From positions 17,174,001 to 17,238,000 of the forward strand of contig NC_083227.1 of NCBI RefSeq assembly GCF_032191835.1: DNA of 64,000 bases. Direction: 5' to 3'. Shown here piece after piece: positions 7,522-62,389 of the stretch. Made by a program: the position numbers and the translations under genes. The stretch's first letter is position 1. Each line of letters starts with the position of its first letter. The DNA comes from Heteronotia binoei. Its lineage: Eukaryota. Under the pieces are notes generated by a model. It saw nothing but the letters and a program-made list of their open reading frames with translations, had not been told where the DNA came from and ran no database searches.

Positions 7522-7648
7522 CCAGTGGGCTGACTTCCCAATCGCTCTCCTCCTTGATTTCCAGGGGGATCCGCAGCTTGATGATCTCCAAGGGATCTTC
7601 CTCTGACTTGGGGGATTTTACTACCTCATATCCCAAGGGGTCTGTTAT
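7522..7648 (-). CDS. ZF-1 middle exon (127 nt, degenerate KRAB-A-like)
   Basis: Acceptor ctgtttcag|ATA, donor CTG G|gtaagg; encodes [42 protein letters not shown]+G; phase 0 to 1 fits the last exon. Confidence 0.8.
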
Positions 7649-7742
7649 CTGAAACAGAAGAGGGCGGGAATCAAGACAAATCACAATAAATGATTTTGGA
7701 GGGCCAGTCTGACCCATTCCTTTCATGTACTTCTGTAAGGGG

Positions 7743-8160
7743 TAGGGTTGCCAACCTCCAGGTGCAGCCTGCAGATCTCTCACTCAGCATTCCCTCTAAG
7801 CTGAGTTAGCATGCGCTAGCTCACAAATTTTTAGCCGCCAGCTACAGCTCATTTTTGTCTTGGCTCAGGAAGGATGACTCCAGAGCACAATAATTTATGC
7901 AGAAGCTCACAACTTTAATGCCAGTAGCCCACAAAGTAGAATTTTTGTTCACAATACTGTGAAGCTTAGAGGGAACATTGCTCCCAGTATTATAGTTGAT
8001 CTTCAGATGACAAAGATCAGTTCCCCTGGAGAAAATGGCTGCTTTGGAGGGTTGACTCTATGGCACGGTACCTGCTGAGGTCCCTCTTCACAAACCCTGC
8101 TCTCTCCTGTTTCCACTCTCAAATCTCCAGGTATTTCTCAACCCAGAGTTGGCAACCCTT
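7743..8160. mobile_element. TAGGGTTGCCA-TIR MITE (hAT-like) with nested CAGTGTTCCCTCTAAG-TIR MITE at 7785-7980
   Basis: Outer TIRs TAGGGTTGCCA / TGGCAACCCT; inner TIRs CAGCATTCCCTCTAAGCT / AGCTTAGAGGGAACATTG flanked by CTCTCACT / CTCCCAGT (8-bp TSD-like). Confidence 0.75.
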
Positions 8161-8439
8161 GCAAGGCACCTGGGGAAATATAGTTCAGAGGATGCCTGAT
8201 TTCCACAGTATGGATTGATGCTTGGAAAAACTACATTTTCCATGAGCAACGGTATTCAAGCTAGAAGCTCCATTATAGCAGCTGTGCATGTGTCCAGGGA
8301 CAGTTCAATTTCTGGGACTCACATATCTGAAGGACAACATCTACCTTTACAGAACCATCCACCACCTTAGGTCAGCCCAGTGCCTTCTTTTTTGAGATGC
8401 ATGCTTTTAAGAACATAAGAACACAAGTTCAGGTGGTTT

Positions 8440-8615
8440 AAAGCAACAGAACAAAGTTTGAGTTCAGTGGCACCTTCAAGACCAACAAAGTTGAATTCTG
8501 GGCATAAGCGTTCATATGAACGAACACTTTCTCAGATACACTGAAACGGATTTCCACAACTAATCCTCCTTATCTTTACCTAACACTTGAGGAAATCTGT
8601 TTCATTGTGTCTATT
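8440..8615. mobile_element. Decayed Penelope-like element terminus
   Basis: Reverse complement of 8462-8540 reads TATCTGAGAAAGTGTTCG..GAACGCTTATGCCCAGAATTCAACTTTGTTGGTCTTGAAGGTGCCACTG, resembling squamate Penelope termini and 47459-47659; a short inverted repeat follows. Confidence 0.5.
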
Positions 8616-9513
8616 GCTCTATTATTTGAGCAAAAAATGCTAAGTCTCTACTATTTGAGCAACATTTCCAGTTTGTTGAATGTCACTTTTTCTTTCTAAC
8701 TTAGTTCTTATATTTTTATGATTGTTCTTCATTTTTTAAAATACAAGCCACTAGGATTGAAGCTGTGGGGGGGATATAATTTTAAAAATGCCTCAGCCTC
8801 ACAGGATGATAGTAGAGAGTTTGAACACTGACAATGCTATGTAAATACAAGGCAATATTCTTAAAGCAGCTTTCTATGTTCATCGCCTAATAATTTAAAT
8901 CAAGATCCACATATGGGTCGAGATGGTGTCATGGCTGCCTATTTGGCATTAAAATCTCCCACTTAAAACACGTGTGAAATTCCCAACATGGACTACAGCT
9001 CTTATGTCCCCCAGGACAAGAGAAACATGGTTTACCGATGCTATCTCTGGAGCTCTTGGGCTGCCTTCTGGTAATAAATGCCCTAGGAACCAGGCATTAG
9101 TTCCCTAGCATCAACACCACCCCCCCCTGGGCTTGTTATATAAACAAATATCAAACCTTCAAAGCTAGAATTCTGTTATCACAGTCCAGAATCTTCTAGG
9201 TGTGGGAAGCAGGTGACCACAGGTAGCCAATCCCATGCCTCTGTTTGGTACCACACTCCTAAATCCCCCTATGACATTAGATTAATTCTCTGGTCCTACA
9301 GGCAGGCCTGCCTGCCGAATGTATTGTACCCCAGATACTCGCCTACACTAGGGCTGCCAACTTCTGAGTCAGACCTTTGAGCTGAAGTCCTGTTAACAGC
9401 AACTGGTTTCACTCCAGGCCAGGAAAAGCTGGACCTGCAGATTTCTACACATCAAAACCTCTGGTAAAGACAGAGGCACAAGCCAGGCCTTTTAATTATT
9501 ATTATTTATTTAC

Positions 9514-9689
9514 CAGCTGTTTAGCAACCCTTTCAATCTGAGGGCCAGAGAACCTGAACCCAGTTCTGCATTTACACTGGCAGGATCATCAGGAACTGCT
9601 CCAGGATCACCAGCTCTGGAATTCGCTCCATGGTGTATCTCTTGGGCTTCAGCCCATGGCTGGCAAAGCTTTCAGAATGGGCTCAGTAC
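9514..9689 (-). pseudogene. Disabled SCAN-domain core of ZF-1
   Basis: After EGPQEVLSPF comes TGA (9672-9674) where ZF-2 and ZF-3 have Trp, then a +1 frameshift to LKPKRYTMERIPELVILEQFLMILPV, a TAA, and loss of the ERGPETxxQAVALAE segment; the old donor CTG|gtaaat is at 9514. Confidence 0.8.
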
Positions 9690-10154
9690 CTCTTGGGGTC
9701 CCTCATCCTGCCGGTAGCAGAACTCCCTGAAGTGCTGGTGGTCCATCTCCAAGCTGACAATGTCCTCATCCAGAATCTCCTCCTTCACTTTCACTGAAAA
9801 ATCAGGGGTTTCATTAGTTTCATCACTTTCTCCTGGGGAGTGGTTCCTATGCTCTCCTCTGGGCCACAGTCTCCCATCCATTTTACTGTTGAAGGAGGCC
9901 TGGTTTTCCTTTGCGCCATCCTCTGAGGAAGACTGAGGCCACCCCTGCTGAGGAGATTCTGCTGTCTTCAGGAACTCCTGCCACTGGGCACCCCAACACT
10001 GTTCTTGACCTTCATCTGGTTCTTGTTTAATTTGTTGAGGACATTCCATGGTTAAAAACTCTCCAATGGTCCCAGCCTGAACAATGGGGGGGTCTCTTCT
10101 TGCTTCTGCCAATCTCTCCTCGGATTTGGCTGCTGGTGGCTCCTGTTCCTCCAT
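9690..10154 (-). CDS. ZF-1 first coding exon (pre-SCAN region plus SCAN start), assuming the internal donor GAG|gtactg
   Basis: Acceptor tcaatccag| at 10175, ATG at 10154 (aaaATGG), sequence homologous to ZF-2/ZF-3 ([32 protein letters not shown]). The 3' boundary is inferred. Confidence 0.55.
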
Positions 10155-10466
10155 TTTGAATCTGAGCTGCACTTCCTGGATTGAAACAGGAAGTTCAGAG
10201 TTTGAGTGCCAAGTAGGGCCACAGCAACATTTGCTCAAATCATTCATCTAATCTGTTTTCATTGAGTAAAACCAGACACTGAGTTTAAAAAAAACAACAT
10301 TATGAAAAGATGTTCTGCCATAGGATTGACAACAGCCTGGAGAACAAAAGTCCAGTCTCATTAACACAGGCTCAATGGGATGTTATTTACCAGGTGATAT
10401 TATTTATGCCATTAAAAAGCATAAGTCTCTGAAAAAGGGGCAAGACATTTTTTTCTCCAGTTTGTT

Positions 10467-10710
10467 TAGGGTTGCCAGGCCTTCCTTGGCCACTGGAGGG
10501 GGACTGGGAGACAGGGTTGCCAGATCCAGGTTGGAAAACTCCTGGAGATTTGTGGATGGAGCCTGGGGTGGGCAGGGACCTCAGTGGGGTACAATGCCTC
10601 CCTCCAAAACAGCCATTTTCTCCAGGGGAACTGATCTCTGCAGTCTGGAGATGAGCTATAATTCTAAGGGATCCCCAGGTTCCACCTGGAGGCTGCAGCT
10701 GGCATCCCTA
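10467..10710 (+). mobile_element. TAGGGTTGCCA-TIR MITE (hAT-like, most abundant family in the window)
   Basis: TIRs TAGGGTTGCCA / TGGCATCCCTA with conserved body CCCTCCAAAACAGCCATTTTCTCCAGGGGAACTGATCTC; many further copies (e.g. 12241, 13835, 15165, 29932, 33030, 48268, 49277). Confidence 0.75.
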
Positions 10711-10975
10711 GGAAGGAGGAGGGGGAGGAGGAGGAAAGTCTGGTTTTATACCCCACCCTTCACTACCTGAAGGAGTCTCAGAGTGGCTTACAACCACCTT
10801 CCCTTCCTCTCCCCACAACAGATATCCTGTGAGGTAGGTGAGGCTGAGAGAGCTCTGAGAGAACTGGTGACTCACCCAAGATCACCCAGCTGGCTACATG
10901 TGGAGAAGGAGTGGGGGATCAAATCTGGTTCTTCAGGTCAGAGTCCACTGCCCTTAACTGCTACACCAAACTGGC
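10711..10975 (-). mobile_element. Squam3-like SINE
   Basis: Ends CTACACCAAACTGGC on the plus strand (SINE head) and carries a (CCT)n tail. Confidence 0.8.
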
Positions 10976-12779
10976 ACAAAAGGTTAACACCAGAACTGTG
11001 AACATGTGAAAGATCTTGGAGAGCTGAGGCCAGTCTGATCCTGAAAGATCAAGGAACTAATACAGTATAAGGCAGATTCTTAAGAAGAAAACAGAGCTTA
11101 AAATCAGAATGGCCTAACCGGTATCCTTTTTGTTGTATTTTTTATTTGTCTCCTTCTTCCATTTTATCTAACATCCCTGTGGGACAAGTTAGGTTGAAAT
11201 GGAGTGACTGGTTCTGGGAATCTGAACCCAAGCCTTCAAAAAAAAGACAGGGCCTTTCTGATCATGGCATCCCACTATGGAAACCCCTTGGAAGACCTGC
11301 AGTCCTAATCAGCGTGACATCCTTCTAGGTCCCTTGACTTCAATGTACTTAGCAGGATGTAACTCTGCTTTGACTTCATTTTCTTCATTTATTCAAATAT
11401 GGCTCCCCCACCATGTTCAAAACCGAGATGCCTCAGGCAGTTCCCAGTGTCAGTAACAATTAAAACAAGTGATAAAAAAGGAGAGGGAAACTAGTAATAA
11501 AGTAGTAAAAGTCTAAAAATCATGATGCGCAAATCCCACAAAATTGATACAAAAGGAACACAAGAACAATTCTAGTCAGGGGCAACAAAGAAACAGATAA
11601 CCAGACCAGGAAAAGGGCGGGGGGGGGGGGGGGTGGCTACCAAAATTCTGTGGAGAAGGAAGGATTTTCATCAGGCACCTAAAAGTCAACAAGCTGGAAG
11701 CTAAGAGAACCACTGTAGAGAGAAAATTCCAGGTGCCACTATAGAAAAGTCCCCATATCTTGTCACTAAAACTGGGCATGTAGAGCAGACAGCAGAGCCT
11801 CTGTTGCAAATCTGAAATGACAGGCAGATTCTATGGTGTGGTCCTTAGAGTCTCTGATTCCGCCAAAGCAGACCTGAGTTCAAATCTCTATTTGGCCTTG
11901 AAATGCACTGCATGGCTAAACACAGTCACTTTCTCATCAATTTACTTCACAGAGTTGGTGAGAGGTTAAAGCCAGAAAACTTTGTGCATCAAGCCCAGCT
12001 TTTCAGAGGCAAGGGCTGGATAAAAAATATTAAAGATAGCAGATGTCTTGGAATGCCTTTATGAGTATCTTACCAGGTCATGACTTATGGCATCTTAAAG
12101 GAAAATCATATACAATATAATTTTCAAACACCTGTGACTACCTGATTCCTTGCCTGTCAGTGTTTGATCAAATGCTGGCTATTTCTTTGCTCAGGGCCTT
12201 CATGGAAGGAAGGGGAGACCCCCTTGACATGGAGGATGTCTAAGGGTTGCCAGCTTTGAGTTGGGAAGTTTGTGGAGATTTAGGAATATACCCTAGGAAG
12301 AGCGGGCTTTGGGGGATGGGAGGGAATTCAGCAAGGTAAAATTCCATACAGCCCACCCCCCCCCCAGGCAGCCATTTTTTCCAGGGGCACTGTTCTTGGC
12401 CTTCTGGAGATTAGATGTAATTCCAGGACATCCAGGCGCTACCTGGAGATTGGCAACTCTATATCCAGAGTAAAAACTGTGCTGATCCATTAGGAGAAAT
12501 CTCTACCACCACCAAAACCCCATTCAGCAACAATTCCTTTTATCAGGGACTCCCCCCTTCCTTGCATCTCTGTCTCTTTGCAATGCAACTTCAGCCTCTT
12601 CTCCCCCCACCCTTTCATGACCATAGATTTCCTTTTTAGCCCCTGCACCTATTTCCTGCCCCCTTCACACTCACCTTCCCCCTGCAGTCTTTACATTCCA
12701 CGTTTCTCAGCAAAAGGTAGGGGAGCGGAGGGAGGGCAGGAAGGTGGTTTCCTCTTGTCACCCCCCTTCATAATTTTTC

Positions 12780-13000
12780 CCTAGGCCTCTCTAGGCCACG
12801 GAGCTCTCTGCACTTAACCCCTTGAGGCGCTGTGGGAAAACAAACCCGGGTGCGAGGCGAAGAAGCATCTTTACGTGGGGCGAGTCGGAAAGGACACAGA
12901 CGAATCTCACCTGGAAATACTTCTTCCTTCACATGTTTGCAGGAATCACTGGCACAAGACGTGAGGAAGGTCACTAGGGCAGGGATTATTGCCCGGAGGG
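12780..13000 (-). promoter_or_regulatory. Candidate ZF-1 promoter and non-coding first exon
   Basis: Local CpG enrichment in otherwise CpG-poor DNA and a consensus minus-strand donor CCAG|gtgaga at 12911/12910, upstream of the 10175 acceptor. Confidence 0.45.
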
Positions 13001-13194
13001 TATTTCGTCTGGATGGCCCTCATCAATCTGTTTCTGTAGCAGCAGAACAACACTGGAGTCCTGGACCAGACCATAACTTCTCCCAGGCTATAAACTTTCG
13101 TAGACCGGCACACTCAAACTGAATCACAAATCTTCTTGTGGCTAACGGATGCAGCATAAACCTTTGAAGACCAATCCAGAGGGGCACCCTAGAA

Positions 13195-13774
13195 CAAGGA
13201 TGTCAAACATTTAGCCCAGGGGCTGAATCAGGCCCCCAGAGAGCTTCTATCATGTCCCTGAGCAACTGGCTGTCCTCTGCTTCCTTCTCCCTATCTCTTG
13301 CCTTCTTCATAACAGCTTTCTTTGCAAGGCTTGCTCAATCGCACAGAAGCTACAGAGCAAAACCTCTGTTTTCTCCATTGGTTGAGGCTCCTCCCTTGAG
13401 GAGGAAGGGGTGAAGGTAGTTTATTTTTCTAGGCTCTTTCAATCATACAGCAGAGCTACTGAGCCAAGCCTCCCTCCCTTCTATTGGCTGAGGCTCCTTC
13501 CTCCCATGGGGAAGGAAGGAAAAAGCCATAGCTTACTTTCACCTGGATCCCATGGGAGAAATACAAAGAAAGCAGCTTTAAGACCAATGAGTGCTAACAT
13601 TTTAAGCATGTTTTAAGGTTTTTTAAAAAATTAATTGTGTTTGTGTCCTTCATAAAGTTTATATATTTGCTACCTAATCTTAAATAGGTACATGCCTGGC
13701 CTGACATGGCCCGGCCCAACAAGGTCTCATTTATGTCAGATCTGGCCCTCATAAAAATGAGATTGACACCCCTG
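13195..13774 (+). mobile_element. hAT (Charlie-like) non-autonomous element
   Basis: TIRs CAAGGATGTCAAAC / ATTGACACCCCTG with 8-bp TSD-like CCCTAGAA / TCCTAGAG; sister copies at 37507-38117 and 55581-58078. Confidence 0.8.
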
Positions 13775-14650
13775 TCCTAGAGATTAATTAATTGATTGAG
13801 ATCCTTAGTGATATAAACTGTCATGGACCAATCTAGTGGCACCTCAAAGCTTCTCCTGGTTAGGAACTTCCTGGACATTTTGGGGTGGAGTGCGGGGTTG
13901 CATTAGAAGAAGGACCTCAGAGAGGTATGATGCCATACAGTCCAAAGTAACAGGTTTCTGCGGGGGGACTGATCTCTTTAGTCTCTCAAGATCAATTCCA
14001 GAACTCCAGGCAGCCCTAGAAATTGGCAACTGTAATCCATTGTGGGATACAGTGCCATAGAGTCCACCCCTAAAGTATCCATTTTCTCCAGGGGACCTGA
14101 TCCCTGTTGACTTAAGATGAGCTCTGATTCCAGGAGATCAGGCCTCATTTGGAGACTTGCATCTCTAACTACTTCACACTGGCTCTCACTACATAGATTT
14201 GTGATCTAATCCAACAGAGCTTTTCTGATGTCCATTTGGGATCTAGCCTTATGACTTGATACACAGCTACTAAGGGATGAATATGCAGGTATGAACCAGC
14301 CCCTTAAGAACACCTGTATTTCTAACCAATTGGTTCCCTAAAAACCAAGACCTGGTTTACACAAATAGCAGATTGAGGTCATGGAATTCTGAAGTGCTGG
14401 GCTTAATAGGAACACTTCAGAATGCATGTGAGAATCTTTCTCTAAAGTTAAAAAGGGGGGTGGGGGGTGGAATCTCACAAGTGAAAACCGATCATATCAT
14501 AGCCTTGCTCATGATCACACAAAACTCCCTAATACTGAATTAGACCCTCAGTCCATCAAAGTCAGTATTGCCCACTCAGATTGGCAACGGCTCTCCAAGG
14601 TCTCAGACAGAATCTTTCATTCCCCTTACCACTTGGTCCTTTTTTAATTG

Positions 14651-14860
14651 GATGGTGGCTCAGTGGTAGAGCATCTGCTTGGTAAACAGAAGGTCTCGGG
14701 TTCAAACCCGGCCTCTCCAACTAAAAAGGGTGCAGGCAAATAGGTGTGAAAAACCTCAGCTTGAGACCCTGGAGAGCCGCTTCCAGTCTGAGTAGACAAT
14801 ACTGACTTTGACGGACCAAGAGTCTGATTCAGTATAAGGCAGCTTTATATGTTTATGTTT
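14651..14860 (+). mobile_element. tRNA-derived SINE with CR1-like tail (Squam2-like)
   Basis: Head GGCTCAGTGGTAGAGCATCTGC...GGTTCAAACCC (A and B boxes), body GAGACCCTGGAGAGCCGC, tail CAGTATAAGGCAGCTTTATATGTT; copies at 21257, 25545, 27806, 43825, 51997, 53390. Confidence 0.75.
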
Positions 14861-15304
14861 GAGATATGGAGGACTTATCTGGGACTTTCTAAATGCCAAG
14901 CAGATGCACTCTCATTGAGCCACAGCCCCTCCCAAGCAGAAAGCAGCACTAGCTTTCTGCTTGAAAAAGGTAAAACTTAATGGAATATTTAAAAATATAA
15001 TCTACTGAACAGGTAGTCCAGAATAGTGCCACAAGAGGATTCTGCGACCGGATGTAAAAATAAGGCCTGGTGGAAACAACTGGCCTCTGTTTTAGGTGTG
15101 CATGCCAAAGATACAAATCCCTGTGCTCAAAGGCATGGGATTATATTGCTGCAATGCTTATGCTTTAGGGTTGCCAGAATCCCCTGGCCGCCGGCAGCGG
15201 ATAGGGCAGGGTAGGGTTGCCGGACCCAGGTTGGGGAACTCCTGGAGATATGGGTATGGAACCTGGGGAGGACAGGGACCACAGTGGGGTTAAAGGCTAT
15301 AGAG

Positions 15305-19758: not shown

Positions 19759-21194
19759 TTAATAGGGCTGTCCTCCTGGGTGTATAATTTCTTGCTCCCC
19801 AACCGCAGAGCTATACGTGAAGCCTTCAGCACGGACTGAATGTTTTCCTCGGTGTACTTTCTTATGTTTTGTAAGGTCCGAACTAGAAATGAAGCGCTTC
19901 CCGCACTCGAAGCAACCGTATGGCTTCTCTCCTGTGTGTGTCCTCTTGTGAGTAATGAGGGACGACTTCCGGTTGAAACACTTGCCACAATCTGTGCATT
20001 TGTGTGGCTTCTCTCCTGTGTGGATTATATTATGGTTGAGAAGGTTAGAACTCGTGCTGAAGCTTTTCCCACACTGGGTGCATTGGTACAGGTTCTCTCC
20101 AGTATGGGTCCTTTTATGGGTAATAAGCGGTGCTTTCGCATTGAAGCTTTTCCCACAATCAGAGCATGTGTAGGGCTTCTCTCCTGTGTGGGTCCTCTCG
20201 TGGATGATAAGGTGGGTCCGTTGACTGAAGCTCTGCCCACAGTAGGAGCATTTATACGGCTTCTCTCCTGTGTGTACCCTCTTATGCATCATCAGGTTGG
20301 TCCGGGTGCCAAAGCCTTTCCCACACTCAGAGCATTCGTAGGGCTTCTCTCCTGTATGGATCCTCTTGTGCGCAATGAGTGAGGCAATCTGATTAAAGCT
20401 CCGGCCACATTCTGAACAATGATATGGTTTCTCACCCGTGTGGACCCTTTTGTGCCTGAGAAGCTGGGAGCTGTTGCCAAAGCTCTTTCCACAGTCAGGG
20501 CACTTGTACGGCTTCTCTCCTGTGTGGGTCCTCTCGTGCGTGATAAGGGATGACTTCCAGTGGAAGCTTTTGCCACACTCTGAGCACTTATGTGGCTTCT
20601 CTCCTGTGTGCACTATGTTGTGGTATATAAGATTCGAGCTGGTTGTGAAGCACTTCCCACACTCGGAGCACACGTACGGTTTCCCACCCGTGTGGGTCCC
20701 CTGATGCTTCAGAAGAGATGCCTTGGTGCCAAAACTTTTGCCACAGTCTGAGCACTGGTACGGCCTGTCCCCTTTTGGGAGTGTCCCCTTGTGCGGCTCA
20801 AGGGACGTTCCATTCTTGAAGGTTTTCCCGCACTGCTCACATATGTAAAATTCTTCTCCCATCTGAGTTTCCCGATTCGTGGGGAGGTCAAAAACTTCAC
20901 AGAGATTCCCACACTCTGTGCAGGTCTTTTTGCTCTTACACTGAAGCATCACCTCACTACTTGCATAAAAGGTTTTACCACCTTCTTTACAAAGAATGAC
21001 CTTCCCCTCTCCTTTCGCTGGATGATCTTCCTGCTGCCTGTCCGATGCCAACTCATTTCTGCCCTCCTCATCCTCCTTGTGAAATGGGACGGTCTTCCCT
21101 CTGGCTTTTCCCACAGAGGTCTCAAGGGGCTCTGCCTGCTCAGGTCTTTCTGGCTGAGCACTCTCCTCCTCTTTTGCCATTGTTCGATCATCAC
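19759..21194 (-). CDS. ZF-2 last exon: 11 intact C2H2 fingers preceded by 2 degenerate fingers
   Basis: Open frame; acceptor tttattccaccag|GT at 21194 (phase 1); TGEKP linkers; TAA at 19759-19761. Confidence 0.92.
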
Positions 21195-22053: not shown

Positions 22054-22180
22054 CCAGCAAACTGGTCTTCCTGTTACCCTCCTGGTCGGCATCTCTTGAG
22101 ACTGACATTTTCACAGGGTCTGACATTATCTGCTCCAATACAGAGGAACTAACAGCTGCATCTTCCACAGGTCCCGGTGC
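22054..22180 (-). CDS. ZF-2 middle exon (127 nt, degenerate KRAB-A-like)
   Basis: Acceptor tttctgcttcag|GCA, donor CTG G|gtaagg; encodes APGPVEDAAVSSSVLEQIMSDPVKMSVSRDADQEGNRKTSLL+G. Confidence 0.82.
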
Positions 22181-22809
22181 CTGAAGCAGAAATGGGGATA
22201 CAATACTGAGACATAAACAGAGACATGAAATGCCAGCAGACATGTTGAGGGCTTCTATTCTCTCCTCTTCCCACCTCAAACAGTCAGGAACTGAAAGCAG
22301 AATTTTCAACTGCCAAGTCAACCAGTCAGAGAGCTCAGTTTCCTGTCCACACAGGAAGCTGCCATAGACCAAGTCAGACCATTGGTCCATCTAGCCCAGT
22401 ATTATCTACTCTGATTGGCAGCAGCTCTCCATGGTCTCAAGCAGGAGTGTCTTTCCTGACCTTGCTAATGTCAACTGGAGGCCGAACCCAGGACCTGTAT
22501 GTGCTCTAACAGTATGGTCCTTGCCTTGAGATTGTATGTGAAGCTTCAGTATTCTGGGATGGCATGTGGGATATCTAGTCCTGTATTTTCTGTGGCAGCA
22601 GATCATCAAGGGCTTTCCCAGACCAGCCCTGCTGTCTGAGATCCTAGGGATTGAACCTGACCTTTCAATATGCAAAGCATACACTCTACCACTGAATTAC
22701 AGCCCCTTCAGAACCCACAAATCATATCGGAAAGACATAAACCAGTCCAACAGACATTCCAAGGAAGCCGGCCGCCGTTGTTTTCTCTGGGTCTCTTGGG
22801 ACAACTTAG

Positions 22810-23502
22810 CCAGAGCTTCTCAGCCTCTGGATATTTCGTCAAGAACTCTTCCGCCAGGGCCACCGCCTCAGAACAGGTCTCTGGTCCACGTTCCATGACC
22901 CAGTTCTGCATTTCCCGAGGCAGGATGGTCAGAAACTGTTCCAGGATCAACAGCTCCAGGATTCGCTCTTTAGTGTGTGTCTCGGGCTTCAGCCACTGAT
23001 GGCAAAGTTCCCAGAGTTGGCTAAAGACTTCCCGAGGCCCCTCGGCCTCCTTGTAGCAGAAATGCCTGAAGCGCTGGCGTCGCATCTCTGAGCTGATGGT
23101 GTTCTCATCGGGTATTTCTTCCTTCACTTTTACAGAGAAGTCCAGGCCTTCATAGGCCTCTGGGTTTTTGTCACCGAAGCCTACCGTGGTTTGGGTCGCA
23201 TATTCTCTCCTCGGCCAGTGGTTGACCTCAGATGTTCCTTTCAAGGAGGCCTGGAAATATTTAACATCATGGCCTGACTGGGGCAATAAGTTCTTCCATC
23301 TTGAATGAGGCACGTTCAGGAACTCTGACCACTGGGCTTCCCAGCCTTGTTGCAGCCCTTCAGTTAGTTCCTGCTTCACAGGATGTGGAACTGCTTTTCC
23401 AATCAACTTTCCAAGGGTTTCCGTTCGGACAACACCACAGCTGCTTCCACCCTCTTCCGATTTCTCCTTCTGTTTCAGGCCAGTTGTGCCCGGCTCCTCC
23501 AT
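22810..23502 (-). CDS. ZF-2 SCAN exon (intact SCAN domain; 3' boundary uncertain, frame stays open to TGA at 22708)
   Basis: Acceptor ctgcctcag| at 23523, ATG at 23502; [79 protein letters not shown] is a complete SCAN domain. Confidence 0.85.
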
Positions 23503-26020: not shown

Positions 26021-26049
26021 TGTGCACTTGCGACATAAAAATGTAACAT

Positions 26050-28310: not shown

Positions 28311-28797
28311 ATAGAATCACAGAATCATAGAGTTGGAAGGGACCTCTAGAGTCATCCAGTCCAACCCCCTGCACAATGCAGGAAACTCACAAACACTTCC
28401 CCCTAAATTCACAGGATCTTCATTGCTGTCAGATGGCCATCTAGCTTCTGTTTAAAAATCTCCAAAGAAGGAGAACCCACCACCTCCCGAGGAAGCCTGT
28501 TCCACTGAGGAATTGCTCTAACAGTCAGGAAGTTCCTCCTAATGTTGAGCCGGAAACTCTTTTGGTTTAATTTCAACCCACTGGTTCTGGTCCTACCTTC
28601 CAGGGCCACAGAAAACAATGCCACACCATCCTCTATATGACAGCCATTCAAGTATTTGAAGATGATGATCATATCACCTCTCATCTGCCTCCTCTCCAGG
28701 CTAAACATCCCCAGCTCCTTCAACCTTTCCTCATAGGACTTGGTCTCCAGACCCCTCACCATCTTCGTCGCCCTCCTCTGGACCCGTTCCAGCTTGG
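28311..28797 (-). mobile_element. CR1 LINE 3' fragment
   Basis: ORF 28409-28807 LERVQRRATKMVRGLETKSYEERLKELGMFSLERR...WNRLPREVVGSPSLEIFKQKLDGHL; CATAGAATCACAGAATCATAG tail. Confidence 0.9.
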
Positions 28798-29000
28798 TCA
28801 CACACACACAGTTAGCCTGACCTACCTCGAAAGGTTGTTCTTATAAGAATGAAATGGATGGGAGAACAATGTAAGCGGCTTTGGATCCCCACTGGGAAGA
28901 AATGCAGGATATAAATCACGGGTTTTTAAAGATTTTTTTTTTAAAAAGTAAAACCTATGCAAGGAATTGCTAGGAAACACAGAGTTTAGCTACATCAGTG

Positions 29001-30800: not shown

Positions 30801-31001
30801 CTAGGACTTAGAGCTCTGTCTCTTTAACCCTTTCAATAAGCAGCAATATTGCGGCACCTTAAAAACTCACCAATTGTTCCAGCATAAACTTTTTGGGGTG
30901 GAGCCTGCGTCCTGGAATGATGTTCAATAGCTTAAATCTCGTGGCGGAATATGTGTGTGTGTGCGTGTGTGTGTGTGTGCGTGCGCGTGTGTATATCTAT
31001 A

Positions 31002-31292
31002 NNNNNNNNNNNNNNNNNNNNNNNNNNNNNNNNNNNNNNNNNNNNNNNNNNNNNNNNNNNNNNNNNNNNNNNNNNNNNNNNNNNNNNNNNNNNNNNNNNN
31101 NNNNNNNNNNNNNNNNNNNNNNNNNNNNNNNNNNNNNNNNNNNNNNNNNNNNNNNNNNNNNNNNNNNNNNNNNNNNNNNNNNNNNNNNNNNNNNNNNNNN
31201 NNNNNNNNNNNNNNNNNNNNNNNNNNNNNNNNNNNNNNNNNNNNNNNNNNNNNNNNNNNNNNNNNNNNNNNNNNNNNNNNNNNNNNNNNNNN
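31002..31292. other. Assembly gap (291 N)
   Basis: Run of N following a (GT)n/(AT)n microsatellite. Confidence 0.99.
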
Positions 31293-39767: not shown

Positions 39768-40837
39768 TTACAGCTTCATTCCTACATGAGTTTTCTTATG
39801 TTTGCGAAGCCCTGTGAGACCGCAGAATCTTTTCTCACAGTCAATGCATTTATATGGTTTTTCCCCTGTGTGGGTCCTTTTGTGAGCTTTGAGCAATGAG
39901 GTCGACCTGAAGCACTGGTCACACTCAGGGCACTTAAAAGGTTTCTCTCCTGTATGAATCCTCTCATGCTTAATGAGATTGGTCTTTCGACTGAAGCTCT
40001 GTCCACAATATGAGCATTTATATGGCTTCTCTCCTGTATGTGTCCTCTTGTGAACTGTAAAAACTGAGCTGTTCCGGAAGCTTTGTCCACAGTCCGGACA
40101 GCTATATGGTTTCTCTCCTGTGTGCATCCTCTCATGTACAACGAGGTGTGGTCTCCGACTGAAGCTCTGTCCACAGTCTGAGCACTGATAGGGCTTCTCA
40201 CCCGAATGTATCCTCTTGTGCGTTATAAGCTGAGAGCTGGTACTGAAGTTCTTCCCACATTCCAAGCAGCCATATGGCTTCTCACCCGTATGGGTCCTCT
40301 TGTGAATGACGAGAGAGGCCTTCTGGTTGAAGCTCTTCTCACAATCTATGCACTTGTAGGGTTTCTCTCCTGTGTGGGTCCTCTCGTGTCTCAGAAGGTT
40401 AGTGCGCTGGGAAAAGGATTTGTCACAGTTTGAGCACCTGAAGGGTTTTTCTCCAGTGTGGATTCTCTCATGGACAACCAAGTGTGATCGATCCTGGAAG
40501 CCTTCTCTGCAGTATGGACATTTATAAGGCTTTTCCTTTATTTGCTGCCTCTGATTCTCCAGAAGATCAAAGATCTGATGGATGCCATGCTGGAAGGTGC
40601 TTTCGTTTAAATCTCTGCGGCCTTCCTCAGAAAGGAAAGCTGCATTTCCTCTCTTCTCTGGGTGGTGGAGCGATCGACATTCTAATCCTTCTGGACTTCC
40701 AATCATCTTGACCTCTTCAGTATCCAGAAGGCCATTCATATCAGCTTGTTCCAAGCATCCTTCACTGACATTCCCAGGTTTGGATGTGTCCAAGGGCAGG
40801 CTTTCCATAGTATTCTCCCACTCCTGCTCATTGCTCA
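39768..40837 (-). CDS. ZF-3 last exon: 9 C2H2 zinc fingers
   Basis: Acceptor tttctgttctag|TG at 40837 (phase 1); 9 complete fingers; stop at 39768. Confidence 0.92.
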
Positions 40838-41508: not shown

Positions 41509-41638
41509 CGAGAAAGCTGGTTTCCTCCTCCTCCTCCTCTTGCTGATCCTCAATGGAAATGTGCACCTGCATAATGTCTGAGTCATCCTGTTCAGATTTG
41601 GGGGAGTTTGCAGCCATGTCTTTAAAAGTCCCCAGAAT
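41509..41638 (-). CDS. ZF-3 middle exon (130 nt, degenerate KRAB-A-like)
   Basis: Acceptor ttttatgttgcag|ATT, donor CTC G|gtaaat; encodes ILGTFKDMAANSPKSEQDDSDIMQVHISIEDQQEEEEEETSFL+G. Confidence 0.85.
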
Positions 41639-42262: not shown

Positions 42263-42967
42263 CTTTTGTTCCAGCCTTTCAGCCTCTTGTGGCCTTTTCA
42301 AGATGTCCTCTGCCAAAACCACCGCCTGGGCACCAGTCTCAGGGCCGCGTTCCCTCACCCAGCTTTGTATTTCCTGAGGCAGGATGGACAGAAACTGCTC
42401 CAGGATCACCATCTCCACAATCTGCTCTTTGGTGTGCCTCTCAGGCTTCAGCCACTGGTGGCCAAGTTCCCAGAGCTGACTGAAGACTTCCTGGGGACCC
42501 TCAGCTTCCCAGTAGCTAAACTGCCTGAATTGCTGACGCCACATTTCTGGGCAGGCAGAATCCTCCTCATCCTCAATCTCTTCCTTCACTTTCACAGAAA
42601 GAGCTGTCCTTTTGTAGGGCTCTGGGGTTTCTCCACTAAAATTGGTCAGGTTCAGAGTCATACATGCTTTTCCAGGCCCCTGGCTGACATCAGTAGGTAC
42701 TCCCTCAAAGGAAGCTGGAAATACCTTCATGTCCTCCACTGACTGGGCCTGAGGAAGCTTAAAGTGTTCTGCCTGCCTCTGTGGGGACTTCACTGTGGTC
42801 AGAAACTCCGGCCACTGAGTTTCCCAGTGCCTGGATGGCCCCTCATGTAGCTCTTGCTTAATTTTTGGAGCAGCTGTCCCAAGCAGAAATGCCTTGATGG
42901 CCCCAGTCTGGACGAGAGAATCTTTTCCTTCCCCAGCGTTGGGTTCTGTCAGGCTCAGCCTCTCCAT
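42263..42967 (-). CDS. ZF-3 SCAN exon (intact); predicted spliced product 634 aa
   Basis: Acceptor ctctgcag| at 42979, ATG at 42967, full SCAN ([60 protein letters not shown]), donor AAG|gtgatg; 705+130+1070 = 1905 nt in frame. Confidence 0.9.
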
Positions 42968-51586: not shown

Positions 51587-51808
51587 CTCATATGAAAATG
51601 TGTGCAGATTTTAATGGTTAAAACGCCTGAAATCAATGGACTCAAATGTCTTTATTGGGGGATAGTTTTTCTGAAGGGTAGGCAAAATGTGCTTTCCTCA
51701 TATGAAAATGTGTGCAGATTTTAATGGTTAAGATGCCTGAAATCAATGGACTCAAATGTCTTTATTGGGGGATAGTTTTTCTGAAGGGTAGGCAAAATGT
51801 GCTTTCCT
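51587..51808. repeat. Tandem duplication, 2 x 110 bp
   Basis: CTCATATGAAAATGTGTGCAG...GGCAAAATGTGCTTTC starts at 51587 and 51697; copies differ only at AAACGCC vs AGATGCC. Confidence 0.95.
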
Positions 51809-52091
51809 TGGCATGCTAGTTTTCAGTGCACAGGGAACTGGAGAGGGCGTTTGAGGGGCATGCCATCCCCCTGCCTCTTACAGTTTGACAGAATTTTTCC
51901 CCAGTGCCCCCACTCTGAGAATTAAGCTGGGTTCATTGGGATCCACACAGGAGATAGAAAGGACAAAAGACCCTGAACGCAGATGAAACTGCGTTACACT
52001 AAAGCTGTCTTGGTCCATCAAGGTCAGTATTGCCTAATCAGGCTGGCAGCACCTCTCCAGGGTCTCAGATTGAGGTCCTTCATATCACCTA

Positions 52092-52399
52092 AAGGTAAAA
52101 GGTAAAGGTAGTCCCCTGTGCAAGCACCAGTCGTTTCCAACTCTGGGATGACGTTGCTTTCACAACGTTTTCATGGCAGACTTTTTACGGGGTGGTTTGC
52201 CATTGCCTTCCCCAGTCATCTGCACTTTCCCCCCAGAAAGCTGGGTACTCATTTTACCGGCTTTGGAAGGATGGAAGGCTGAGTCAACCTGAGCCTGCTA
52301 CCTGAACCAGCTTCCGCTGGGATTGCTCAGGTCATGAGCAGAGGGCTCCAACTGAAGTACTGCAGCTTTACCACTCTGTGCCACGGGGCTCTTTCCCTG
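52092..52399 (-). mobile_element. Sauria SINE inserted in a Squam2-like SINE (51997-52495)
   Basis: AAAGGT tail repeats at the left end, CCACGGGGCTC head at the right end, TSD TATCACCTA (52083-52091 and 52400-52408). Confidence 0.85.
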
Positions 52400-53672
52400 T
52401 ATCACCTACTGGTCCTTTTAAAGTGGAAATGCCAGGGGTTGAATTGGACCTTCTGCATGCAAAGCAGAAGCTCTTCCACTGAGCTACAGCCTTTCCCTGA
52501 AAAGTCAGAGTGATGGTCCATCTAATCCAGCATCCCCATTTCCCACAGTGGCCCACATGGGATCATGCCCCAGGTTTATTAGCATGTATCATAGAGAATG
52601 TCACATTGAGAGTTTTTTTTCCATACAATGAAATACCTCAAGCAAGCCATAGAAGAGTGAGGTTAAAGCGGAAATTATTTTTTAAAAAAATCATGGCAGA
52701 CTATGTTGGACTTGGAGATAGCAAATCAGGACCTGCCCTGCCCATCTCTGAATGTGGATTGTTTGGTAAATAACAATAACAGTAGTAGTAATAGTAGCAG
52801 GGCTTTTTTTTGAGCAGGAATGCACAGGAATGCAGTTCCGGTCAGCTTGGTGTCAGGAGGTATGGCCTAATATGCAAATGAATTCCTGCTGGGCTTTTTC
52901 TGCAAAAAGCCCTGTGTGAAACAATGGTGACATCAGGGGGTATGGCCTAAAATGCAAATGAGTTCCTATCAGCCTGTTTCTGACACCAAGCCAGCTGGAA
53001 CTGCGTTTCTGTACATTCCTGCTCAAAAAATGCCCTGGTTCCAGGACCATTAAAGACTGGGGAAACTGAATGGGGAGGGGGTTTAAATTCTGCCCCATGC
53101 GGTTGACAACTGATTTTTATTTTTAAAATATCTGGGATTGTCAAATGGCCCTTTAGATAAGCCCATGATGATTCTGTTCCATTTCCCATGTTCTCAATTT
53201 TGTAAGGGTCTCTAAAAAAATGGCAGCCCTTCCTAAAGAAGCACGATTTGATTATAGTTACCCATGTTGTTATCTGGCTTAGATTGCTGCAGTGCTTCCC
53301 ATATGGGGCAGCTTTTGAAGTTTGTTTAGAAGCTTCCACTTTTAAAATCAGAATCCTGGACTAGTCCAGGGTGACAGTTGGGTGAGGAGGGGCCGCAAGG
53401 CTTAGTGGTGGAGCATCTATTCCGTATGTAGAAGCTCCCAGGTTTGATCCCCAGCATCTCCAATAAAAAGGACCAGGCAGTGGGTGATGTGAATGACTAC
53501 CTGAGAAAGCAGCTGCCAGTCAGAGTAGACAATACTGAGTTGAAGAGACCAATGGCCATTCAGCATAAGGCTTATTTATGTTTATAATGTAGTTTATTGA
53601 TTGTCCCCCCCCACCCCCGTTAGTTCATTTCGATTGTATTTTTGTAAGGTGCTGTGGGGCCCCACTGGGAAT

Positions 53673-54200
53673 AGGGTTGCCAAGTCCAATTCAAGAAATA
53701 TCTGGGGACTTTGTGGGTGAAGCCAGGAGACTTTGTGGGTGGAGCCAGGAGACATTAGGGGTGGAGCAAAGATCAAGGCTGTGACAAGCATAATTGAACT
53801 CCAAAGGGAGTTCTGGCCATCACATTTAAAGGGACAGCACACCTTTTCAATTCCTTCCTTCCATAGGAAATTATGAAAGATAGGGGCACCTTCTTTTGGG
53901 GCTCATAGAATTGGACCCCCTGGTCCAATCTTTTTGAAACTTGGGGGGTATTTTGGGGAGAGGCACTAGATGCTATACTGAAAACCTGGTGCCTCTACCC
54001 CAAAAAAACAGCCCCCCCAGAGCCCCAGATACCCGCGGATCAATTCTCCATGATTTTCTATGGGAATAAATCTCCTTAGGGAATAACAGTTCCCAGCAGA
54101 CATTTCCCTCCCCTCCCCCCACTTTCTGATGACCCTGAAGCGGGGGGAGGGCCTCTGAACCGGGGGATCCCCTGCCCCCACCTGGGGATTGGCAACCCTA
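53673..54200 (+). mobile_element. Long TAGGGTTGCCA MITE
   Basis: TIRs TAGGGTTGCCA / TGGCAACCCTA; same body as 33303. Confidence 0.8.
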
Positions 54201-54488
54201 ACTGGGAAGGGGGGAGGGATTCCTATATCAATATACTTTCTCATTTCATTGTGACACCTGAATGGAAATCCTTACTTGTGTGTATGTTATTTTTCATCTT
54301 TACCAATTTTTGCTTCTTTTCCCATTCCTTCGACTTGTATAACCTGCTATAAAATTTAATAAAATCAAAACCTCCCCAAGGTTCTTTAAATTTCACATTT
54401 CTGGTGATTCATTGATTCATGTGTGTATGTTTTGGGTTTTTTTCCAGAGCATTTTGGGGGTGAAACTGGCAGTTTCCCCCCCTGGGAA

Positions 54489-54596
54489 ATGGAGAACTGG
54501 GCCAAGGAACGTGGCCCAGAAATCTGTGCTCAGGTAGTTGCCTTGGCAGAGGATTTCCTCCTGAGGCAGCGTGAAGCTCAGAGATGGGATCCGCAG
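54489..54596 (+). CDS. ZF-4 first coding exon: C-terminal part of a SCAN domain only
   Basis: Acceptor tttttttccag| at 54448, gaaATGG at 54489, MENWAKERGPEICAQVVALAEDFLLRQREAQRWDPQ, donor CAG|GTGAGT (phase 0). Confidence 0.7.
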
Positions 54597-55580
54597 GTGA
54601 GTGAACTTCATCCTGGTACTCAGAGGGTCCCAGAGCTAGAAACAGCAGAGGGACAGCTGAAGATCTAAGTGGGTCTTAGGCACAGGTTGTAGTTTACAGC
54701 TCCCTTCCTCCTCCCCCACCTTATTTTGCTGTTCCCTCTCTTCCCATCTTAAATTTCCCTTCCTTTTCCCATCTCCTATGTCATGGCTCCACTGGAGAGG
54801 TAATCACACATTTCCTGATGGAAACAGCACCTTGAAAAAGTAGCCAAGCAGGGCTCCCTGGTGTTCTGGCATCTTATGTTGCTGCCAGATCATCCCTTTC
54901 CCAGTCATTGGTTGGACCTTCCAAAAAACTATCTAAACTTTCAAACAGTGCAGCAAAGCAAAATTATTCACATCCTGGCAATCCAATAGCATGTCAGTTG
55001 CCATGACACATCACATTCACATCCTGGCAATCCAGTAGCGTGGCATAAGTCCCACCCTATGACGAAGTATGGATGAAACAAGCAACCAAGTCGACCGCTT
55101 GTTCGTCAGGGCTGTTCTAATGCACTCATTTGGGGCTCTGAGAAGCATGTATACAAGTACTTTGCAAAGTAGCCAATTTCTTTATGGAATGAACTAACTT
55201 CTAAAGAATTTTCTATTCATCTCCGGCATTCAGTGAGATATATATGGACTCTTTAAAAGGATTCTTTCAGAGGATATTGGTGTGCAATAAATGCCTTTGA
55301 ATATTGTAATTTTACACAGAATGAATTCAATATGTGAATGAATTTGCATGAATTTATTAGATTGTATGAATTCACATAAATATTTTGAATAAAGATTCGT
55401 TATTGTGGATTGTGATACTTTCTGTATCTTCTGGTACCAGCCTATGCACAGTCCTCTCCCTTTATTACTTTTTAATCTCCTGGTGGGGCCTGGTGATCTC
55501 ATGGAATTACACCTGATCTTTAGAGGGCAGAGATCAGTCCCTCTGGAGGAAATAGCTGTTTTGGATGGTTGACTCTATGG

Positions 55581-58078
55581 CAGAGATGTCAAACACATGG
55601 CCTGCGGACCAGATCAGGCCCGCAGAGGGCTCCAATCAGGCCCTCCAGGAACTGGCTGTCATCTGCTTCATTTTCCCTATCCTGCTTTTTTGGGTCACCA
55701 TTTTGTGTTTCTCCCTGGATAAGCCAGGCAGCAAAGCAGCCTTTCCCTATTCCCCCCTCCCTTTTCCCAAAGGGAGGAGGAGGGAGGAACAGCCTCAGCC
55801 AGTGAGGGAGCTTGGCTCTATAGCTCTGCTGGGTGATTAAGTTTGCCAGGTTCAATTAATCACCCTGCAGAGCTACTGAAACATGCCACTCTTCCTTCTC
55901 TTTAATGGCTGAGGCTCCTCCCCCTCGTGCCCTGGGGAAAGAAAGAAAGAGCCAGAGCTTCTTTTGCATAGTCCCCACCATTAGGAGAGCAACAAAGAGT
56001 GCTTTTAAGAGTAGCAATGTTTTAGTGAAGGTATGAGCTTTTTGCCTTGCTACAGAGAGAGAGAGAGAGAGTTTTGTTGGGCTTCTTATGGGTGTAACTG
56101 GGTTCCCCTCCTCTTTTTCACTGTACTAATGCCCTCCAGTCTTTCTCAATAGGAAAGTGTGTGAACTATTTAGAAGAGAAATCTCAACATTAGGCTGAGA
56201 GTGTGTTCCACCCCAGGTTTATCCAGCAAATTTTCCTTAATTTTTCTTTCACATTTTCCTTTGATTGGGGGTCCTGAATTTAGACTTCCCAGATAGTAGG
56301 CTGACACTGACCACTGTACATGGCTGTCTCTCTGTTCTTGTAGTTGTTTTTTTGGGGGGGAAGTTGTATTTTTTTTTTAGTTGCAGTCATTTTTCCGGGG
56401 AAAATTATAGTTTTGTTGACAAGCACATAGCCATGGTGCCTTCACATGTTCTTGCCTAGTACATAAGCAACTTCTGTACAAAAGCTCACAATGCCCAGCT
56501 GCTTCATATTCCTCTGAGTCTTAGGCTCAAAGCATTGACCATGAGATGTCTGTAATGAACATCAATGAATCAAAAGTAGGTGGGAAAAGGTAAAAGTGGG
56601 CTCTACACTGATCTTCATGAATTCATATGATTTTTACATTGAAATGAAATCAAACCACTATTATTCTGTAGATCCTGTCATAGACTATAGGAAGGACCAC
56701 AAAAATCATGCCTCCACGATTTGTGATGCCTCACCAATGCAAAAAACAGGGTTCCAAAGCACGGATCCTCATGAATTCATATGATTTTTACGGTGAAATT
56801 AAATCAAACAACCATCATGTTGTAGATCTTGTCTTAGACTATAGGCAGCACCAGAAAAATCATGCCTCCACGAATCTGTGGTGCCACAACAGTGGAAAAA
56901 CATGTTTCCAAACCACAGATCCTCATGGAGCCTCATGATATTTACTTAGGATCCCCCCAATTCACCATTAATTCTTATATCATGTCCATGGGCAGAGTTT
57001 GCACCACAGAAATCATGGATCCACAGCTTTGTGGCAGCACCATGGACCAAAAACTTGGTTTTGAACCACGGATCCTCATGGATCCTCATGATTTTTGCTT
57101 TGGATCCCCCCAAGCCCACCATCCAATCACATATCGTGTCCATGGGCAGAGGCTGCACCCCAGATAGCATGGATCCACGGCTTTGTGGCAGCACCATGGT
57201 GTTGCCACGAAGTTGAGGATCCATGTTTTCTGTGGTGTAAACTCTGCCCATAAACAGGATGTGTGATTTAATGATGATGTTGGGATAACCCAAAGCACAA
57301 AGCCATGGATCCATGATTTCTATGGTGTAAGCTCTGCCCATGGACATATGTTATTTGATTGTGAATTTGGCTTGACCCAAAGCAAAAATACGATATAAGA
57401 ATTGATGGTGAGGTTGGGGGAATCCAAAGCAAAAATCATGAGGATCCATGGTTTGGAAACATGTTTTTCCACTGTTGTGGTGCCACAGATTCATGGAGGC
57501 ATGATTTTTCTGGTGCTACCTATAGTCTAAAACAGGATCTACAGCATGATGGTGGTTTCATTTCATTTCACTATAAAAATCAAATGAATTCATGAGGATC
57601 CGTGCTTTGGAACCCTGTTTTTGTACTGGTGATTTTTGTGGTCCTGCCTATAGTCTAAGACACGATCTACAGAATAATAGTGGTTTGATTTAATTTCAAT
57701 GCAAAAATCATATGAATTCATGAAGATCCGTGTAGATCTGACTTTTACCCAGACCCAAAGTCGGTTTGCAACTTACAGATGTGCACACCTGAACAGCACA
57801 TATTCAAGATTGGTACAGCACAGATGTCTGCAGTTATTGATGCAATAATTCATAGCAAGAGGTGACATTTATCAGAGACTGTAAAACAAAATATTGCAAG
57901 CGTGCTAATATTTTAAGCATGTTTTATTTTAAAAAATCTTTAATTGTGTGTCTGTGCCCTTTATAAAGTTTATATGTCCGCTGCCTGGCATTACATTTTA
58001 TGATACACATGTACCTGCCCGACAAGGTCTCATGTATGTCAAATCCGGCCCTCATAGCAAATGAGTTTGACACCTCTG
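55581..58078 (+). mobile_element. hAT non-autonomous element enlarged to 2.5 kb
   Basis: TIRs CAGAGATGTCAAAC / GTTTGACACCTCTG with perfect 8-bp TSD CTCTATGG; ends match the ~600-bp copies at 13195 and 37507 but ~1.85 kb of extra sequence lies inside. Confidence 0.85.
56589..57749. repeat. 1.16-kb loopless palindrome made of ~154-bp tandem units (foldback-like)
   Basis: Left end GGTAAAAGT..CTACAC.GATCTTCATGAATTCATATG mirrors right end CATATGAATTCATGAAGATC.GTGTAG..ACTTTTACC; centre ACCA|TGGT at 57196/57197; units start at 56610, 56764, 56918, 57071. Confidence 0.92.
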
Positions 58079-58636
58079 CTCTATGGCATTATACCCCACT
58101 GAGATCCCTCCCCTCAAGCCTCACCTTCCTCCCTACATATATATATTTTTCTAAATCCCTGCATATAAAAACCCTAGTATGTCAGGTATGACAAAAGCAA
58201 CTTTGTCTCAAGCAAGCTAGATTTCCATGAGCAGGGGATTTTTTTAAAAAAAATGGACAAACATTCAGGCATGTGAATTTCTACGTGTGCCCTGGGGTGG
58301 TACAGCCCAGATACAAACTGACAAGCTTGCTAAGTGGGGGCTCAGTCATTGTGACTAGAAACTTTCCTGTCCTCTTTGAAGCTTCCATCCATATTTGATG
58401 CCCACAGTGCTAACAGTGCTGTTTTAAGTGGAGTTATCCCTTTCTAAGCTTAATGACTTCACTTGGCTTGGAAAGGTATAACCTCTGGGGTTACTGTGGG
58501 CAGGGTCTGCCCCCCACTTCTGGAAAGCTGCATCTCCTTCTGCTCAGGTGGCTCAACAGCAGTGTTTGAACATCTGCTGGTACCCCTGTAACAATTCCTA
58601 TCTCTAAACTTTCTGATCCTCTGCTTTGTTGCACAG

Positions 58637-58736
58637 GCAGCGGCCATGAACCTGTCTGATATGGAGCAGGCTCCATCAGACGTGGAACAGGAACAGAGCT
58701 TTAAACAGGAGGAAGATGAGGACACCATCTCACTGG
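58637..58736 (+). CDS. ZF-4 middle exon (100 nt, shortened degenerate KRAB-A-like)
   Basis: Acceptor ttgttgcacag|GCA, donor CTG G|gtaagc; encodes AAAMNLSDMEQAPSDVEQEQSFKQEEDEDTISL+G; phase 0 to 1. Confidence 0.8.

Positions 58737-61159: not shown

Positions 61160-62389
<1,230 letters not shown>

Follow-up and report, generated by a model that had tools for sequence, protein, structure and literature searches.

What is the short coding exon that stands between the SCAN exon and the zinc-finger exon in each of four neighbouring genes of the gecko Heteronotia binoei, an exon that has the dimensions of one encoding a KRAB-A box and that is not recognised as such by Pfam? Few regulators of tetrapods evolve as fast as the KRAB and SCAN zinc-finger genes, and the largest SCAN expansion is that of squamates. 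The genes in question are located in a 64-kb stretch of DNA (RefSeq assembly GCF_032191835.1, contig NC_083227.1, positions 17,174,001 to 17,238,000), analysed here as a whole and referred to as the window, which contains four SCAN-C2H2 zinc-finger genes, three of them (genes 1 to 3) encoded by the minus strand and the fourth (gene 4) by the plus strand. The answer favoured here, to which we assign a probability of about 0.78, is that each is a squamate SCAN-C2H2 gene whose first post-SCAN exon, termed the ghost exon below, would represent a vestigial KRAB-A box.

One exon family behind the SCAN exon

The ghost exons of genes 1, 2 and 3 occupy positions 7522..7648, 22054..22180 and 41509..41638 of the minus strand, and that of gene 4 occupies positions 58637..58736 of the plus strand; each sits between the SCAN exon and the C2H2 exon of its gene. 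They are 127, 127, 130 and 100 nucleotides (nt) long, respectively, the gene 4 exon being shortened on its 5' side, and all four run from phase 0 to phase 1. Each is preceded by a polypyrimidine tract and AG and followed by GTAAG or GTAAA, and in each only frame 0 is open, closing with a terminal Leu and then G|gt. These positions, lengths, phases and ends were given in a preliminary description of the locus and were found to be correct when checked in the sequence, as were the residues listed there: positions 31-34 of the KRAB-A register read IKEE in gene 1 and ADQE and DQQE in genes 2 and 3, gene 4 carries FKQE, gene 2 carries ED..V, and the gene 3 exon, which ends in a poly-Glu run, starts with ..TFKDMA.. 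and thus includes the reported TFKD.

The geometry of a KRAB-A exon (approximately 127 nt, from phase 0 to phase 1, with a terminal L-G|gt) is therefore present in the window exons, and the preliminary description was right to regard this geometry as canonical, since the KRAB-A exons that were mapped in the squamates Eublepharis and Hemicordylus are also 127 nt long and run from phase 0 to phase 1. Its expectation that standard domain scans would miss the ghost exons was likewise borne out: the four exon peptides returned no match to the Pfam KRAB family (PF01352, gathering score 20.4 bits), or to any other Pfam family, at E<=10.

The four exons align with each other and with orthologous exons, and they belong to a much larger set. 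A HMMER search with the SCAN exon of gene 3 found 2,813 relatives; in most of the 150 best-scoring ones, to which the examination was confined, the segment immediately behind the SCAN exon shares a single pattern, approximately x-P-[FL]-E-E-[VA]-A-V-N-S-P-K-S-E-Q-D-P-S-D, followed by Q-L and then by E-x-K-Q-E-x-D-G-E-A-S-L-L-G. The proteins whose names were consulted are all from squamates (geckos, Anolis, Sceloporus, Hemicordylus, Zootoca, Rhineura and Crotalus), with the exception of one platypus protein, which does not have the pattern. A ghost-type exon was found in 93 of 204 SCAN units at a cut-off of 12 bits, and a profile of the window exons and their orthologues recruited 50 post-SCAN segments, none of which is a canonical KRAB. 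Conversely, a profile derived from 50 related exons, all of them from other species, recognised exactly the four ghost exons when the entire window was translated in six frames, with 58.4 bits for gene 3, 47 for gene 2, 41.2 for gene 1 and 23.1 for gene 4, the next best fragment scoring 6 bits. By these reciprocal searches, the four exons share common ancestry with each other and with a large family of post-SCAN exons that extends over geckos, lizards, amphisbaenians and snakes and that is acidic and rich in Ser and Pro.

Relationship to KRAB-A

The relationship of this family to KRAB-A is most apparent when it is considered as a whole. A hhalign comparison of 54 ghost exons with 24 canonical squamate KRAB-A domains from the same protein set yielded a probability of 90% and E=1.4e-6, the alignment running in the expected register through 42 columns with no gap. 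The score of 28.9 compares with a maximum of 13.6 among 200 column-shuffled nulls, and following removal of the 11 most KRAB-like members it still amounted to 17.1, above all 200 nulls. Profile-profile similarity to KRAB-A across many squamate paralogues, on which the preliminary description had staked its proposal, is thus found at the level of the family. In the opposite direction, a hidden Markov model (HMM) of 50 non-canonical ghost exons gave scores of 13.9-22.4 bits to nine of 29 canonical KRAB-A domains, the top-scoring of 31,200 shuffled decoys reaching 14.2 bits. No Pfam family other than KRAB matched two or more of the 54 ghost exons, KRAB itself matching 4/54. The sole PDB sequence recognised by the ghost profile is likewise a KRAB box, 1v65, a suggestive but non-significant match (E=0.88).

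Single post-SCAN exons furthermore form a graded series in their matches to Pfam KRAB, all of which are in register. The series begins with protein P0054 (E-values of 2.3e-7 and 1.7e-4, corresponding to 30.7 and 21.6 bits, above the gathering score) and continues through P0139 (1.1e-3), P0131 (2e-3), P0109 (1e-2), P0124 (2.6e-2), P0039 (3.1e-2) and P0096 (6.7e-2), these six scoring 13-19 bits. When an HMM of eight such Pfam-KRAB intermediates was run against 2,767 six-frame fragments of the window, the ghost exons of genes 3, 2 and 4 were the top three (E=2e-5, 3e-4 and 1e-3, respectively). At the level of the family, the retained KRAB-A columns are [FL]5, E6, [ED]7, [VA]8, A9, V10, E16, D21, Q24, L27, E30, E34 and L42.

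Intermediate and canonical forms also occupy the same slot as the ghost exon. The intermediate exon of Hemicordylus protein P0131 (..PFEEAAV..SE......D.EQREIYRDVKQE..), which is 130 nt long and runs from phase 0 to phase 1, lies directly behind the SCAN exon, and in the protein model of Anolis P0060 a fully canonical KRAB-A follows straight after the end of the SCAN exon. Family-level profiles, graded intermediates and the shared slot and geometry together argue that the ghost family is very probably derived from KRAB-A. The claim of KRAB ancestry in the preliminary description accordingly holds at the level of the family, while the ungapped residue matches in the four window exons, on which that claim had been built, do not carry it (hhalign P=0.13).

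A KRAB-A origin leaves room for more than one history. The exon map of Hemicordylus L005:1112-4481 reads SCAN exon, 121-nt ghost exon (phase 0 to 1), 56-nt spacer (phase 1 to 0), 127-nt KRAB-A exon (phase 0 to 1) and zinc-finger exon, and Eublepharis L001:27546-29120 has the same arrangement, with a ghost exon of 115 nt, a spacer of 71 nt and a KRAB-A exon of 127 nt. Six SCAN units combine a ghost exon with KRAB, and many of the 22 units scored as 'KRAB-only' start with a diverged exon of ghost length. The occurrence of a ghost exon together with a downstream canonical KRAB-A in several paralogues suggests that the ghost exon may be an old duplicate rather than a sole KRAB that decayed in place, and to this extent it detracts from the interpretation favoured here. 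Under such a history the ancestor would have been arranged as SCAN, KRAB-A copy 1, spacer, KRAB-A copy 2 and zinc fingers; copy 1 would have become the ghost exon, and the window genes would have lost the spacer and copy 2, a loss that keeps the reading frame. However, no relic of a canonical KRAB-A was detected anywhere in the window, introns included (best score 4.7 bits), P0060 and P0054 have their KRAB-A directly behind SCAN, and the downstream KRAB-A and its spacer could equally represent a later capture from a neighbouring KRAB-ZNF gene. We therefore regard descent from an old paralogous copy as a genuine though lesser possibility; the ghost exon may stem from the first KRAB-A, worn down once another had joined it, or from an early pair of copies.

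Several further observations tell against a vestigial KRAB-A box in the window genes. The Pfam KRAB matches remain below the gathering score for all intermediates but P0054; the gene 1 exon was not reached by the eight-intermediate HMM among the 2,767 window fragments; hhalign comparison of the window exons with KRAB-A gave the P=0.13 mentioned above for the four exons alone and P=0.025 when their direct orthologues were included; an AlphaFold2 model of the gene 3 exon, computed with the family alignment, consists of generic helices at low confidence, with a predicted local distance difference test (pLDDT) score of 67.7; and inclusion of the exon rests on RefSeq gene models of other geckos. 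Since the window exons have no significant direct match by hhalign or Pfam, their homology to KRAB-A is transitive. A rival reading is that of an acidic linker exon of the usual kind with no relation to KRAB, whose likeness to KRAB-A would stem from composition, from a shared need for phases 0 to 1 and from chance. In its favour are the Glu-, Asp- and Ser-rich sequence, the missing Pfam matches, the P=0.13 of the four-exon profile and the non-significant E-value of the 1v65 match. Coincidence of this kind is nevertheless improbable in view of the family-level alignment, which exceeds all 200 shuffled nulls, the shuffled-decoy control, the graded Pfam series within one slot, the recurrence of KRAB in 4/54 members and the canonical KRAB-A that fills that slot in P0060 and P0054.

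Contact residues, constraint and the genes around the exons

The KRAB residues that contact KAP1 comprise Asp-Val, Ile, Phe, Glu, Leu, Tyr, Val-Met and Glu-Asn (Stoll et al. 2022). In the window exons, E16 and E34 are kept, genes 2 and 3 retain D7 as well, and F12, Y28, M32 and N35 are replaced in all, as is L20 in all but gene 1; V31 is replaced in genes 2 and 3, and gene 1 has Ile at this position. The hydrophobic contact positions have become Ser, Pro, Gln, Lys, Asp or Glu, and W17 has been replaced as well. Replacement of F12, L20, Y28, V31 and M32 suggests that the ghost exon probably no longer recruits TRIM28, and loss of TRIM28 binding is thus considered likely.

A psi-K-x-E motif occurs in 34 of 93 family exons, compared to a mean of 6.9 and a maximum of 17 upon shuffling, and 28 of the 34 motifs fall at the column of KRAB V31-M32-L33-E34. 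Gene 1 (IKEE) and gene 4 (FKQE) carry the motif, in line with the SUMO acceptor that the preliminary description had named among possible new roles, whereas the exons of genes 2 and 3 do not, a point against the interpretation favoured here. As psi-K-x-E followed by an acidic tail corresponds to a SUMO-acceptor consensus, a role in SUMO modification is the most concrete hypothesis for the function of the exon. Additional psi-K-x-E motifs (IKQE or VKQE, and VKVKEE) lie N-terminal to the SCAN domain in genes 1 to 3 (9681-10088, 22756-23502 and 42263-42967, minus strand), which would give the proteins of these three genes several predicted SUMO-type sites each.

In the proposed sequence of events, a KRAB-A box behind SCAN would wear down, the hydrophobic residues that are buried against KAP1 being replaced and recruitment of TRIM28 probably being lost. 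What is left, acidic, rich in Ser and Pro and probably flexible, would most likely serve as an effector or as a linker that joins SCAN, the dimerisation domain, to the DNA-binding array, and in about one third of the family, including genes 1 and 4, the conversion of VMLE to psi-K-x-E with acidic residues would make SUMO-dependent regulation a candidate. A more far-reaching proposal holds that the KAP1-binding V-M-L-E was turned into a SUMO acceptor (psi-K-Q-E plus an acidic tail) and that the decayed KRAB would act as a SUMO-dependent or acidic activating effector without TRIM28, constituting a hidden module in hundreds of 'SCAN-only' genes, in some cases beside a canonical KRAB-A; taken in its entirety, this proposal is speculative and rather unlikely.

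Gene 2 bears on the age of the exon. Its annotated orthologues, 752-775 amino acids long, come from six further squamates ranging from Gekko to Thamnophis; every one has the ghost exon and none is annotated with KRAB. The exon measures 127 nt in both other geckos mapped at the DNA level (Gekko and Sphaerodactylus), and its length and frame are identical across the three mapped geckos. Among these three, its ratios of nonsynonymous to synonymous substitution rates (dN/dS) are 0.36, 0.16 and 0.23, compared to 0.02-0.03 for the zinc fingers, 0.07-0.18 for the SCAN core and 0.20-0.27 for the linker within the zinc-finger exon. No other part of gene 2 has a dN as high as that of the ghost exon, yet the dN/dS of this exon is well below 1, which signifies that it evolves fast but not neutrally. 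In the other genes, ghost-exon identity is 84% between gene 3 and Paroedura and 60% between gene 1 and Rhineura, in both cases at least equal to that of the flanking linker, and gene 4, built as a SCAN remnant followed by the short ghost exon and the fingers, has this layout in common with Gekko japonicus, with 79% identity.

Judged by these substitution ratios, the ghost exon is kept in frame under purifying selection, and the preliminary description, which had called it acidic and retained in frame, was accurate on both counts (dN/dS 0.16-0.36 for gene 2). By the distribution of orthologues, the decay is old and family-wide, in the lineages of genes 1 and 2 it predates the separation of geckos from the remaining squamates, and retention in frame would roughly equal the age of squamates. 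The ghost exon is present in all four window genes as first described, although its decay is not special to them. That the exons are instead drifting leftovers in dying genes, open by chance alone, as the broken SCAN exons of genes 1 and 4 (detailed below) and the top dN in gene 2 might suggest, is very improbable given a dN/dS well below 1, the constancy of exon length and frame in three geckos, the presence of the exon in all six annotated gene 2 orthologues, the gene 4 layout, short exon included, shared with Gekko japonicus, and four intact zinc-finger open reading frames (ORFs).

The SCAN exons of the window differ in their state of preservation, and by Pfam the domain is complete in genes 2 and 3 and fragmentary in genes 1 and 4, the SCAN exon thus being broken in two of the four genes. 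That of gene 3 (42263..42967, minus strand; PF02023 E 7.7e-39) is intact and ends in the phase-0 donor AAG|GTGATG. That of gene 2 (22756..23502, minus strand; PF02023 E 2.2e-42) is extended by a tail of 25 codons and closes, within the region 22754-22830, at a weak donor in phase 0, AAT|GTCTGT, a site that is common to the Gekko model (GTCTGT) and, at the same place, to Sphaerodactylus (GTTCGT). The notion of a gene 2 SCAN exon without a usable donor was ruled out, both other gecko models using this same weak phase-0 site, and the exons of the window model (747, 127 and 1433 nt) have the lengths of the Gekko exons. The SCAN remains of gene 1 (9578..10088, minus strand) consist of two pieces, with profile positions 2-24 and 34-58 in different frames, and the last third of the domain (59-90) is absent; the ghost and zinc-finger exons downstream are intact despite the broken SCAN exon. 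In gene 4 the remnant (54471..54596, plus strand) covers profile positions 58-89 only and has a good phase-0 donor, so that phase-0 donors close the SCAN exons of genes 3 and 4 as well as that of gene 2. The model of the gene 4 orthologue in Gekko japonicus (P0176) begins at a Met within the same SCAN remnant, which implies that the truncation is common to both geckos and that gene 4 may be translated without a working SCAN domain.

N-terminal to SCAN, a motif of the form FLASFEQVA.AC.WP..EW is conserved in many relatives (P0017, P0018, P0021 and others). Its matches to the KRAB seed profile are at chance level, and a weak echo (..FPASFEG..) is visible in the gene 3 protein.

The zinc-finger exons are located at 5866..7319 (gene 1), 19759..21194 (gene 2) and 39768..40837 (gene 3) on the minus strand and at 61182..62389 (gene 4) on the plus strand. 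All four open with a good phase-1 acceptor and hold a long, intact C2H2 ORF; C2H2 arrays were found by Pfam in genes 1, 2 and 4, and the array of gene 3 was read from its ORF alone. The closest annotated relatives of the window genes are proteins of Gekko japonicus, Sphaerodactylus townsendi and Paroedura picta. The orthologues of genes 2 and 4 (P0001 and P0176) lie on one 62.6-kb Gekko japonicus contig (KQ751452.1, L002), which indicates that the cluster is syntenic between these two geckos.

An assembly gap at 31002..31292 separates genes 2 and 3, about 7.5 kb upstream of the gene 2 start codon (23502) and about 8.5 kb beyond the gene 3 stop (39768). As it falls in no coding exon and in none of the introns joining them, the ghost-exon claim is unaffected by it, and the adjacency of genes 2 and 3 alone is unproven. 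A (GT)n-type microsatellite at approximately 30950-31001 runs into the gap and may explain the break at this point. ORFs at 4171-5443 (plus strand) and 28409-28807 (minus strand), situated 3' of the gene 1 stop and 5' of gene 2 and outside both coding parts, resemble fragments of long interspersed nuclear elements (endonuclease/reverse transcriptase, with a CR1-like 3' end).

Comparison with known KRAB and SCAN systems

A search of the literature, incomplete in its coverage, found no published description of a relic KRAB-A exon in squamate SCAN-only genes. Censuses of these genes assign them to classes by Pfam, and a relic exon that is invisible to Pfam alters the counts of SCAN-only versus SCAN-KRAB genes. 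The path from one class to the other would also be read differently, as decay within the transcript and not as deletion. Constraint since the deepest squamate splits would furthermore provide a natural gradient, with complete KRAB-A at one end and the relic at the other, along which the residues needed for TRIM28 binding, and the fate of a KRAB once this binding is gone, could be explored.

Compared to canonical KRAB-A (PF01352), the ghost exon is alike in size, in its phases, in its L-G|gt end and in its place just upstream of the zinc-finger exon. It differs in that the window exons are below Pfam detection, in that the KAP1-contact hydrophobics, W17 and N35 are replaced, in its strongly acidic, Ser/Pro-rich composition, and in that it is not followed by a KRAB-B exon.

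A closer parallel is offered by the variant KRABs of mammals. Those of the old KRAB zinc-finger proteins with SCAN or DUF3669 domains diverge from the consensus and are non-repressive or do not bind TRIM28 (Helleboid 2019, as cited in PMC10547255), and human KRABs include acidic, divergent ones that activate, the non-repressive ones being clustered in SCAN genes (Tycko 2020, bioRxiv 10.1101/2020.09.09.288324). In common with these, the ghost exon combines a position beside SCAN with divergence from the consensus, and the activator subset is likewise the more acidic one. However, the mammalian variants are recognised by Pfam and have been assayed, whereas the squamate exon is far more decayed. 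Since divergent, non-repressive KRABs beside SCAN are already known in mammals, the present finding extends a known theme and does not open a new one.

ZFP28 carries two KRABs, the repressor KRAB_1 and the weak activator KRAB_2 (Tycko 2020), and the squamate paralogues with a ghost exon plus KRAB-A similarly hold two unlike KRAB-derived modules. The window genes, in contrast, hold the decayed module only, and the order and spacing of the modules differ from those of ZFP28, the squamate arrangement being read from DNA and protein models.

The most direct comparison is with SCAN-only proteins. Lizards possess SCAN-ZNF genes without mammalian orthologues, for which an independent expansion was concluded (Liu et al. 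2014, PMC3971581), and 240 SCAN-KRAB and 89 SCAN-only gene models were reported for Anolis (PMC3971581); a path from SCAN-KRAB to SCAN-only has since been proposed (bioRxiv 10.1101/2025.03.03.638093). The window genes would be scored as SCAN-only, and they fit this path. They differ in that their apparent loss of KRAB would not be a deletion, the relic exon presumably staying in the transcript, and its retention suggests that many squamate 'SCAN-only' genes may in fact consist of SCAN plus a vestigial KRAB.

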